A DNA stretch of 64,000 nt. Source: Pocillopora damicornis. Taxonomy: Eukaryota. The notes beneath the pieces were generated by a model, which was given only the letters and a program-made list of their open reading frames with translations, was not told the origin of the DNA and did not search any database. The translations under genes were made by a program, and so were the position numbers. This document shows, piece by piece, positions 25,597 to 28,870 of this stretch (position 1 is its first letter; every line of letters begins with the position of its first letter). Location of the stretch: positions 1-64,000 of the forward strand of contig NW_020846127.1 of the NCBI RefSeq assembly GCF_003704095.1, in the 5' to 3' direction.

Positions 25597-26490
25597 AAAT
25601 TGATCATCTTTAAAATTCTACTCACCAACCAACCCACGTTGTTCTAATACCAGTTGAGAGAAATTCTCTAACCATCGAAGCTGGTTCGTAACGACGACCG
25701 CTTGTTTTTTTTTCTTCGATAATTATACCTTATTTTCTCATTCAACAGTTTGTTTATGATCACTGTAATTTTGAGAATTTTTATCGAAACATTTTTGTCA
25801 CGTAACGTGACTTGCGCATATGAGACCACATGATCCTGTCAGGTTTGAGACACAACAAACACAAAGCTGTCGAAGCCTCTACTCGTAGTAAACTTTTGTA
25901 TATTTGCATTAACTGTTTTGGACATCTCACAGCGCATTGGTCCATCGTTACGATACTTAGATGTGTTCCAAGGTTCCTAAGCGTAAAATCCATACGTCAG
26001 CCATCTGATCGGCTATGAAGGTGTCTCTTGATCTGTCGGTCAATTTTCATTTCTTAGCTAAGCGCGCGGTATTAACTTGCGCAGTCTAATAAAATGAGAA
26101 GCTTCTCATGGTTTGTATGGTAGTACGCTTGGATAATACAGCACTCTCGTGAGCCAAATGCGCATTCCGATTAGAGCAATTTTTCACGCAGTCTCAAAAA
26201 CAGTCTCAATGGTCGATCAGAACTAACGAAAATATCACACGGAGCCAATCAGCACTCAAAGAAAAAAGGAGTACGGGAAAACGCGAGGGACTAAGTCTAT
26301 GGTTTTATCTTGGAGTCTAAGCATAGTTGGTTGAGAAGATGGCACACATTTTGAAGACATTTCACGGGGCGAATTACACCAAAACCATTCTAGTCTTTAA
26401 AAAAATCGAGCTCTTTTATTTCTCCTTTCACAACATTACAACGTGGCACAAAACAACTTTCTTTATACGCATTTCGTTCATGTGCGAGGG

Positions 26491-26554
26491 GACTGGTAAC
26501 AAATTCAAAAACCTACAAAAAAGCTTTACTGTAAGTTCGTCATAAAAACCCGTC
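26491..26554 (-). promoter_or_regulatory. SECIS element 2 of SelP-like gene B
   Basis: GACGGGT-TTTT-ATGAC-GAACTTACAG-TAAAGCTTTT-TTGTAGGTTTT-TGAA...ACCAGTC: core, helix II with one bulge, AAA loop. AATAAA ~70 nt further downstream (26415-26420). Confidence 0.7.
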
Positions 26555-26606
26555 TGAGATCTCGCGATGAAATGTTCTATTTCTCTGATTTCAACCGAAA
26601 ACTGAT

Positions 26607-26660
26607 GACTTCCATCCAAACAAACGGTTAACACTCTTTCCCGTTTATTCTTCATAAGTC
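26607..26660 (-). promoter_or_regulatory. SECIS element 1 of SelP-like gene B
   Basis: GACTT-ATGAA-GAATAAACGG-GAAAGAGTGTTAA-CCGTTTGTTT-GGAT-GG-AAGTC: AUGA/GA core, 10-bp helix II, AAA in the apical loop, helix I GACTT/AAGTC. Confidence 0.8.
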
Positions 26661-27229
26661 TTCATATTTGTAAAGGCTGAAACATAAGACTTCCCCACTA
26701 TCACAAATTCGGCACCAACTGTAAGGCATTGGAAAGGTGCTATGATTCGACTTTTTTTCTGCTACAGCAAATAATAATGAAAAAAAAGAGACCAAATAAG
26801 ACCCAGCTTTATATTATCATATTCATAGAGTTTTCATTAATGGACTTTCTACCGAATGCTATCGCTTGAGTTTGAAATTTTCTTTGATCTGTAATAGGCA
26901 CGGAAACAATTCCGTAAACGGACATAGAACAATCAAATTGCACGGAGCAATTTGATTGTTCCTCGAATCATTTTTTTGGCTTTCAGGGGGCAGATTCATT
27001 TCGCTTTGTTGTCCTTAAGGCTTTGTTACTTACTTTGCGGGCCTTATCGACTAGGAGCGACTAATTTCCTCTGGCGTTTAAGTCCAAATGAAGAAACTCT
27101 ACGACAAAATTCCTACCACGGAATTAACCCCCTCCCCCCTTAAAAGTTAAACCCTTGTGATAACCAACTAAACTCTACGGAAAGCGCGAAATCACATCAG
27201 TTTCATTCCAGACTTGAAGGCTGAGCATC

Positions 27230-28870
27230 TTACGGAGTGGTCACCTTGCCTTGAAATCGAGTTTTTTCTGGAGCAGGTTTGTTACACTGCGGGCAGTTTC
27301 TGTAAGCATCTTCGATGACTTTCCTGCAAATCAGCAAAAGACGAAAACTGGTTCAACGGGTTTCTAAAAATGTGGTATACGGGTTTGCCTAACACGCACG
27401 TTACAAAGAAACGGTTGTCCCAAATAGCAACGAAACTATCAGCAAAATTAATCTTCACTTGATTCCTGACAAAATTTAGCATTCTCAAAAGTGATAGACT
27501 TGTAATTTCTTTTCACAATATGTATGCATAATTTTAGCAAACAGGTGATAAGAAAAGAGAAACTTTCCGCCGGAGTCTTCTTGATTAAACAATTAATTCT
27601 CCTTTCTAATTTACCCGCAAATGAGTGAATTCTAGAAGAGAGAATTACTAATTTGATCTTAGTGGTTTAACCCTTTACCCCCAACATCAGTGTCTATATT
27701 CTCCATACTATTCATTATACATTTCCCAAGGTGCTGACAAAGAGAATTTGTTTAATAATCAAGAGCTGCTTCGGTTGATGATCATTTCCTTTATTCCCAT
27801 GACCTTAATGTTTGATTCAAGGGTGATGTTGTAAGGAGAAATTAAATTCTAGTCACTCTTACGAGTTAAAGGGTAAACTCACCATTCAAGACGGATATCC
27901 GAAGGATTTAAGGGAACTACTGGGAATAACTGGAGTTCCCCCTCAAGACTTCCGCAACGGTTATAAACAAATATTCCAGTCTTGTTCAAACCAAATTCTG
28001 TAGACAGGAGACCCGGGGTAGGCTCCTCGAACATGCCATCAGTTTGATTCCAGGACTGAGAGAAAACATTCTGGCCAACCACTGTCATGAAAACAATGTC
28101 ACCCATCTCGCTGTAGATGCGAAAAATGTGTGTAAGAATATAAAGAGCGGCTACTAATCCACTCGAGCCACAAGCCTGACCTTGATGCTTCGTGGGGAGA
28201 GCTATTTCTTCTTTTATTTTGATTAGGATAACCTGTTTTTATTGAGACAAGTGGGCTGAATTTTTTGGTAGGGAGCCCTACAGTGGTACCTTACTGGAAT
28301 TAAGTAATTGTCCTACTAACCGATTAACCTTTATCTTCCTCTGCGAAAGAAATCGCTCGGTAAACATTTATCCTTTAGAAAAGCCAACCTTAGAAACGTC
28401 AGCTCTCTTCCGTGGCGAATTTACATTATCAACTCAGTTGATTAAACCAATTGAAATTATCCATTTCGAAATAGTTGCTCGAGTATTATAGTAACCCCAC
28501 GCAGAGTGATTGAGCGAGAGGTGACGTAATCTTCGTCCGACGAGAGCGCCCCTATCTCTGTTGACAGCTGAACGAAAGAAATAACCGATGACTTTCGGTT
28601 GCACTCTTCACTAACGACTTACCTCCCCTTAGCGACCTCACGCATCTCGTCCATTTTCGCAATGGCCTTGACGCGACAGTCAGCCTGTCATCAGACTCTC
28701 TGCCGTCAAGCGGAGTTTATCACCCCTAGGACCACCACGGATCCCTGTGCCCGAGCGTCGAGCACTGGACCCATGGATGGCCGCTGTCATCGTCACCGTC
28801 AAAGAGAATCCGACAGCGACACACAAGCAAGCAGAGTGACGAAGAGGAATGCCAACATTCCCTTCGCCAT
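27230..28870 (-). CDS. Selenoprotein P-like gene B, 189 aa, six predicted Sec (U24, U26, U28, U55, U60, U61). Exons 28870-28623, 28110-27883, 27323-27230
   Basis: Hand translation: MAKGMLAFLFVTLLACVSLSDSLURURUQRPSMGPVLDARAQGSVVVLGVINSAURQRVUUQADCRVKAIAKMDEMREVAKGS/EMGDIVFMTVV...GIFVYNRCGSL...RLEW/KVIEDAYRNCPQCNKP...GKVTTP*. Both introns are phase 2 and exon 2 is 228 nt, identical to gene A. Two SECIS downstream. Confidence 0.82.

Follow-up and report, generated by a model that had tools for sequence, protein, structure and literature searches.

The window analysed here comprises 64,000 nucleotides of Pocillopora damicornis (assembly GCF_003704095.1, contig NW_020846127.1, positions 1 to 64,000 of the forward strand) and carries two SelP-like genes on its minus strand, which we refer to as gene A and gene B. 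Gene A runs from 42522 to about 40986, has one UGA and a U-x-x-C motif, which is the canonical SelP active site, and is the sole match to Pfam SelP_N (PF04592) in the genome. Gene B gave no match to Pfam SelP_N, and its exon 2 matches that of gene A with a BLASTP E-value of 3e-4 and an hhalign probability of 68.6% (E 4.6e-5). These weak but consistent similarities suggest that gene B is a divergent SelP-N-domain paralog. The two paralogs are separated by a single-exon gene for a 323-aa G-protein-coupled receptor (31565-32536, minus strand), whose orthologs carry Pfam 7tm_1. Since the same receptor gene adjoins the SelP-like genes in loci L004, L005, L019 and L021, as it does in the window, the loci are syntenic among corals.

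Transcription of gene B through both hairpins

Gene B is represented by RNA contigs from four sequencing runs, and its splice joints were confirmed in runs from three studies. The joint 27322>27882 was found in four runs and the joint 28110>28623 in three, both with GT..AG borders on the minus strand. A single RNA contig covers 26411-27324 with zero mismatches and thus joins exon 3 to the 3′UTR through the two hairpins that are the subject of this study, E1 (proximal) and E2 (distal). A contig from an oligo-dT library stops at 26391, where 22 consecutive T on the plus strand correspond to the poly(A) tail, and further contigs end at 26396-26411. The earlier note on this DNA had named a gene B transcript ending before 26660 as the outcome that would undo its proposal of tandem SECIS hairpins. 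The RNA indicates otherwise, as the mRNA continues past both hairpins to about 26391. Thus, both E1 and E2 lie in the 3′UTR of an mRNA that has in-frame UGA codons. The features of both genes are listed in Table 1.

Table 1. Features of gene B and of the SECIS-like elements behind genes B and A (window positions).
Feature	Position	Strand	Basis or detail
Gene B, 189 codons, three exons	27230-28870	-	RNA splice joints, translation, weak SelP_N homology
Gene B exon 1	28870-28623	-	all six UGAs
Gene B exon 2	28110-27882	-	
Gene B exon 3	27322-27230	-	TAA at 27232-27230
Gene B 3′UTR	26421-27229	-	about 810 nt to poly(A) signal, holds E1 and E2; one RNA contig
Poly(A) signal and cleavage site	26391-26420	-	AATAAA 26420-26415, cleavage near 26391; RNA contig ends
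E1 (proximal SECIS of gene B, probable)	26591-26680	-	MFE fold, descriptor, Rfam SECIS_1, pairing in orthologs
E1 outer helix	26680-26675 with 26596-26591	-	
E1 helix I	26664-26656 with 26611-26603	-	below small internal loop
E1 AUGA	26655-26652	-	
E1 helix II	26650-26641 with 26627-26618	-	10 bp
E1 apical loop	26640-26628	-	13 nt, starts G-AAA
E1 3′ GA	26616-26615	-	
Linker E1-E2	26566-26590	-	conserved; identity 0.72 to four other corals
E2 (distal SECIS of gene B, probable)	26484-26565	-	Rfam SECIS_1, descriptor, pairing in 7 species
E2 outer helix	26565-26561 with 26488-26484	-	GCGAG/CUCGC
E2 helix I	26554-26548 with 26497-26491	-	
E2 AUGA	26543-26540	-	
E2 helix II	26538-26529 with 26518-26509	-	10 bp, four G-U
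E2 apical loop	26528-26519	-	10 nt, starts U-AAA
E2 3′ GA	26506-26505	-	
A1 (proximal SECIS-like element of gene A, E1 homolog)	40219-40284	-	AUGA 40272-40269, GA 40234-40233
A2 (distal SECIS-like element of gene A, E2 homolog)	40110-40164	-	AUGA 40158-40155, GA 40119-40118

Several other features of the gene B transcript and its introns were recorded. RNA contigs of two runs differ from the window by a 14-nt insertion at 26788 and by about 15 substitutions across the 3′UTR, a sign that those samples include a second allele or a closely related coral. The upstream, poorly conserved part of the 3′UTR contains a further near-perfect hairpin of 16 bp (26927-26961, minus strand) that the UTRs of other species lack. 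It may be a lineage-specific insertion, and the ortholog L016 is without about 360 nt of this upstream part, around the same place. Intron 2 contains a dispersed repeat of about 195 nt (27665-27860) with thousands of candidate copies at 86-91% identity, and intron 1 a 50-60-nt fragment of another dispersed repeat (28400-28505) with at least 295 candidate copies. The peaks of RNA depth within the introns, at 27672-27855 and 28408-28499, are due to these repeats.

Structure of the two hairpins

Folding and a descriptor search both place two hairpins of the proposed AUGA, helix, AAA loop and GA design on the minus strand within 26491-26660 and its immediate borders, and the AATAAA expected after them is the poly(A) signal of Table 1. 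E1 and E2 share a common design in which an AUGA/GA internal loop separates helix I from a helix II of 10 bp, which is capped by an apical loop with AAA. The SECIS core quartet, with AUGA on the 5′ side opposite GA on the 3′ side between helix I and helix II, is present in each, although the quartet of E2 attains the canonical register only if one U on the 3′ strand is bulged out. The length of helix II falls within the range of about 9-12 bp seen for SECIS elements, and the unpaired AAR, which should lie 10-13 nt after the core, begins 12 nt past AUGA in E1 and E2 alike. The helix I stems are about 48 nt apart and the two AUGA motifs 112 nt apart.

Folded on its own, E1 has a minimum free energy of -26.1 kcal/mol (z -3.4), a value matched by none of 200 shuffled sequences. 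E2 alone reaches -13.2 kcal/mol (z -0.7), which is no better than shuffles. Both hairpins still form when the whole 830-nt 3′UTR of gene B is folded. An RNA variant at 26513, an allele found in three runs, turns a U-G pair of E2 into U-A. The apical loops are open and 10-13 nt long, with a mini-stem of at most 2 bp predicted in E1; in these predicted folds both elements, with their AAR in the apical loop, look like form 1 SECIS.

Compared with the elements of ordinary single-SECIS mRNAs (Rfam RF00031), E1 and E2 agree in the AUGA/GA quartet, in a helix II close to 10 bp long, in the AAR 12-13 nt past the core and in lying in the 3′UTR. The coral case differs in that two elements are present and in that their AU- and GU-rich helices score below the gathering threshold of the family. 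As a candidate microRNA precursor, E1 was rejected, as its match to mir-703 (16.4 bits against a threshold of 88) is noise.

Descriptor search and a second pair behind gene A

To match the descriptor, a site had to have [AG]UGA, AA 10-13 nt further on and a 3′ GA; helix II could contain no more than one bulge, and helix I had to span 4 bp or more. Applied to both strands of the window, the descriptor returned six matches, and in four of these helix II is 10 bp or longer. All four lie on the minus strand and form two tandem pairs, E1/E2 and 40272-40233/40158-40118, which sit 575-830 nt past the stop codons of the two SelP-like genes. The second pair, A1 and A2, lies 714 and 828 nt past the stop of gene A, the two matches being 114 nt apart. 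Both fold like E1 and E2, helix II of A1 is in register with that of E1 in an alignment of 11 sequences (A3), and an ATTAAA is found just past A2, at 40100.

The earlier note had found a single SECIS behind gene A and had taken the dual arrangement behind gene B as the mark of a multi-Sec mRNA. The first of these statements is wrong, as gene A has two elements, as do its orthologs L017, L019 and L021, and the distinction built on it falls as well, the single-Sec gene and its orthologs having a homologous pair. Two SECIS elements in one SelP-family 3′UTR are therefore a feature of gene B, with E1/E2, and probably also of gene A, with A1/A2 behind its stop. Because gene A and its orthologs carry the homologous pair, the pair predates the A/B duplication and does not track the number of Sec codons.

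One explanation for such hairpins is that they arose by chance in AT-rich sequence or belong to a dispersed repeat. AT-rich helices that include several G-U pairs do form readily, and two repeats are present in the introns of gene B. However, in 60 block-wise dinucleotide shuffles of the window the expectation for matches whose helix II has 10 bp or more was 0.15, with a maximum of 2, versus the 4 observed, all at matching positions. The 301-nt block holding the gene B elements is single-copy in the 234-Mb genome and is conserved in orthologs. On the sequence evidence we therefore reject this explanation, which we judge to have practically no chance of being correct. A further 258 kb or so of coral sequence (both strands counted) was also scanned with the descriptor. 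Other loci of the same genome, 83 kb on both strands, held a single match, the best Rfam SECIS match of that genome, and in 175 kb of loci from other corals 14 of 14 matches were copies of E1/E2-type elements.

Rfam SECIS_1 scores

The gathering threshold of Rfam SECIS_1 (RF00031) is 35 bits. In local searches E1 scored 20.5 bits and E2 19.1 bits, both below this threshold, and SECIS_1 was the best Rfam family for E1. These weak matches surfaced only in short local searches; over the whole window Rfam gave no match at the gathering threshold and no SECIS match at the E-value threshold, and SECIS_1 gave no match for A1 or A2 in the window. In the Rfam check suggested in the earlier note, neither hairpin reaches the gathering level.

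The orthologs score higher. Values of 31.8 bits for E1 of L016, 21.1 bits for E2 of L016 and 30.4 bits for A2 of L021 were obtained, the best matches found at these loci. These near-threshold scores at orthologous positions support the SECIS assignment. Genome-wide, the best SECIS_1 match reaches 33.9 bits and no scored candidate attains 35; the SECIS_1 model is thus insensitive in this genome. This top match, L001 (G000:C1708:1290035-1290099, plus strand), is also found by the descriptor, and the 1.5 kb upstream of it show no recognisable coding exon. A 23-bit match, L002 (G000:C3230:409008-409068, minus strand), lies inside a cyclophilin-type coding exon and is a false positive. Because of this match, a SECIS_1 score of about 20 bits is noise at the scale of the genome and has little meaning alone. 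Sec-type GPx genes, which have an in-frame TGA, are present in the same genome, and neither Rfam nor the strict descriptor found a SECIS in their 1.5-kb flanks; the real elements of these genes probably lie farther out or fall outside the descriptor.

Conservation and compensatory change in other corals

Relatives were found by protein searches with pieces of exon 2 (68-99% identity), and their contigs were compared. Of the gene-B loci, six extend far enough (L016, L004, L014, L005, L006 and L007), and all six have both elements, 111-115 nt apart; their exon 2 is 68-91% identical to that of the window. Loci L008-L013 end before the 3′UTR and were left out, and L015 ends just past its copy of E1, with one descriptor match. 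The three gene-A loci named above likewise have both elements, 114-136 nt apart.

Identity across the block formed by E1, the linker and E2 is 0.70-0.76, compared with 0.31 for the upstream 3′UTR, the first 500 nt of which barely align. Conservation also covers the linker and the sequence from there to the poly(A) signal, and AATAAA is kept in the orthologs that reach that far. Taken alone, conservation therefore does not single out the hairpins. When the 3′UTRs of A and B were aligned globally with MAFFT, the elements did not line up, which shows how far the two UTRs have diverged; outside the elements there is no alignment between them.

The base pairs of the elements were read by anchoring on AUGA and GA. 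Each of the 22 elements has the same AUGA, 3′ GA and AAR, and standard pairs fill 216 of the 220 helix II cells. Changes on both sides of a pair occur at pairs 1, 7, 9 and 10 of E1 and at pairs 1, 4 and 10 of E2. At E2 pair 4, seven B-type copies have C-G and four A-type copies have G-C. In one alignment of E2 with A and B types (A4) the 3′ strand is 2 columns out of register, and this alignment was left out of the pair counts. In alignment A3, helix II of E1 is 98.2% paired, compared with at most 57% when the strands are slid, with four pairs changed on both sides. Its covariation is 0.382 versus 0.264 in shuffles, a level reached by 0 of 500. The two-element structure is 91.6% paired in seven B sequences, against at most 47% when slid, and helix II of E2 is 100% paired in 7 species.

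Covariation across corals, one of the checks proposed for these hairpins, thus gives a positive answer for helix II of E1 when the A paralogs, which are few and related, are added to the alignment. Among the seven B orthologs alone, which are few and close, covariation is not above the shuffle control. Compensatory change that preserves pairing is seen in helix II of E1 and at E2 pair 4.

These data also bear on whether both hairpins are needed. A single hairpin could work as the SECIS, with the other being a conserved structure for mRNA stability or 3′-end processing, or a slowly decaying duplicate. E2 is thermodynamically weak, its distance to the poly(A) signal is 85 nt, the conserved block extends beyond the hairpins down to that signal, and gene A with its one Sec should require just one element. 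Furthermore, mouse Sepp1 mutants without SECIS 2 are healthy, although their plasma Sepp1 dropped sharply (PMC5133445). Against this, the AUGA, GA and AAR stand at canonical distances in every one of the copies compared, helix II of both elements has been kept through changes on both sides, and each type attains roughly 30 bits on SECIS_1 in some species, in the E1 and A2 orthologs scored above. The pair also survives in both paralogs although the remaining UTRs no longer align. We consider it unlikely that only one of the two works, and at least one of E1 and E2 is almost certainly functional as a SECIS.

The six UGAs of gene B

The UGAs of gene B are at codons 24, 26, 28, 55, 60 and 61, and the frame has no TAA or TAG before its terminal stop. 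They form the pattern U-x-U-x-U followed by U-x4-UU, and exons 2 and 3 have no UGA. The base after UGA is C at five of the six; the sixth is followed directly by the next UGA. Among the loci compared (L004, L005, L007, L008, L009, L010, L014 and L015), orthologs keep the six UGAs in frame as U-Q/R-U-Q/R-U and U-x4-UU-Q-A-D/E-C (window 28688-28801, minus strand). At Sec 55, L005 and L007 have Cys instead, as does L015 at Sec 60, and replacements are by Cys codons only. The genome has two tRNA-Sec genes (77.8 bits, anticodon TCA).

The hairpins had been put forward as independent support that the six UGAs are decoded. A functional SECIS is a necessary condition for reading them, and the hairpins support decoding as such; the part of the argument that relied on a contrast with gene A does not hold, as gene A has the pair. 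In comparisons of the coding sequences, decoding is more strongly and independently supported by the conserved in-frame UGAs, by their exchange for Cys and by the lack of TAA and TAG.

Alternatively, the hairpins might be unrelated to selenocysteine, with the UGAs terminating translation or the protein beginning at a downstream Met. Automatic gene prediction (P0002) does start the protein at the Met just past the last UGA, and this reading is in keeping with the unreached Rfam gathering score and with the missing Pfam SelP_N match of gene B. However, the frame upstream of that Met opens with what looks like a signal peptide, includes a segment similar to the Sec-containing strand of gene A and is free of TAA and TAG. 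The UGAs are conserved across species with Cys as their only substitute, the kink-turn and AAR motifs are exactly of the SECIS type, and gene A, with its canonical SelP motif, is followed by the same module. An origin of the hairpins outside selenocysteine biology is therefore very improbable in our assessment.

Discussion

In this study, we examined two tandem hairpins in the distal 3′UTR of a spliced, polyadenylated coral mRNA by their anatomy, their position in the mRNA, their conservation and their compensatory changes, alongside UGA codons that are exchanged for Cys and a genome that has tRNA-Sec genes. We conclude with good confidence that both hairpins are functional eukaryotic SECIS elements. 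The pair is very probably a genuine, inherited SECIS module rather than a mark of multi-Sec decoding.

From the known action of SECIS elements we infer how the pair would serve gene B. The AUGA/GA kink-turn core of each element would bind SECIS-binding protein 2, which would recruit eEFSec with Sec-tRNA(Sec) to ribosomes at the six exon 1 UGAs, and these would then be read as selenocysteine. E1 and E2 may divide this labour between them. The module is older than the duplication that gave rise to gene A (one Sec) and gene B (six Sec), and both lineages have kept it.

The closest familiar counterpart is vertebrate SELENOP (Sepp1), where two SECIS elements also occupy one SelP-family 3′UTR behind several UGAs, the distal element is also near the poly(A) site and the sequence between the elements is also conserved (PMC5133445 and, in part, PMC9337670). 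In vertebrates, SECIS 1 is of form 2, SECIS 2 is of form 1 and most Sec codons belong to a C-terminal tail (PMC5133445). The coral pair departs from this arrangement, since both gene B elements are form-1-like, with a proximal element that is not of form 2, and their AUGA motifs are only about 112 nt apart. It also does not serve a C-terminal multi-Sec tail. The six Sec codons of gene B are all in exon 1, within the first 61 codons and with no tail, and gene A has one UGA. Unlike vertebrate SELENOP, the coral pair also serves a one-Sec paralog, and the genes are short and consist of SelP_N only. A 2016 study of SELENOP reported that, among the sequences it sampled, both elements never accompanied a short coding sequence (PMC5133445).

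Amphioxus offers a second comparison, with the tandemly duplicated SelP genes Bf.SelP_a and 3NSelP (Jiang et al. 2012, PMC3473315). As in the coral, a single-Sec SelP gene without C-terminal Sec nonetheless has two SECIS elements, and the other duplicate gained extra N-terminal Sec (PMC3473315). The means differ, however, as amphioxus adds Sec by repeats of whole Trx-like domains (PMC3473315), whereas coral gene B has one domain with clustered Sec. In the cnidarian Nematostella, SelP was not found (PMC3473315). The coral genes, like one amphioxus gene, are short coding sequences with both SECIS.

Variable UGA numbers have reportedly been described for metazoan SelenoP by Baclaocos et al. (2019, J Mol Biol). 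In that work the oyster SelenoP is said to have two SECIS that were not functionally differentiated in vitro, and the SelenoP genes reportedly have an expanded C-terminal multi-Sec module, unlike those of the coral.

Whether a UGA is a stop or selenocysteine is decided by SECIS elements, which automatic annotation misses. With hairpins behind gene B that are real, conserved and part of the transcript, it becomes credible that this gene encodes six Sec. Sister genes with homologous SECIS pairs, one with a single Sec and the other with six, constitute a natural test system for the role of a second SECIS, a question that also arises for vertebrate SELENOP.

A fuller reading, to which we give even odds of being right, is that the pair is ancestral to the coral SelP family and that in gene B it drives the decoding of six clustered N-terminal UGAs more than 1 kb upstream of the elements. 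The clusters are U-x-U-x-U at codons 24-28 and the adjacent UGA-UGA at codons 60-61. If this is true, paired SECIS elements would not exist solely for processivity along a tail, since the one-Sec sister gene keeps its pair, and corals would have a route to a multi-Sec protein that is independent of the C-terminal Sec tail of SELENOP.
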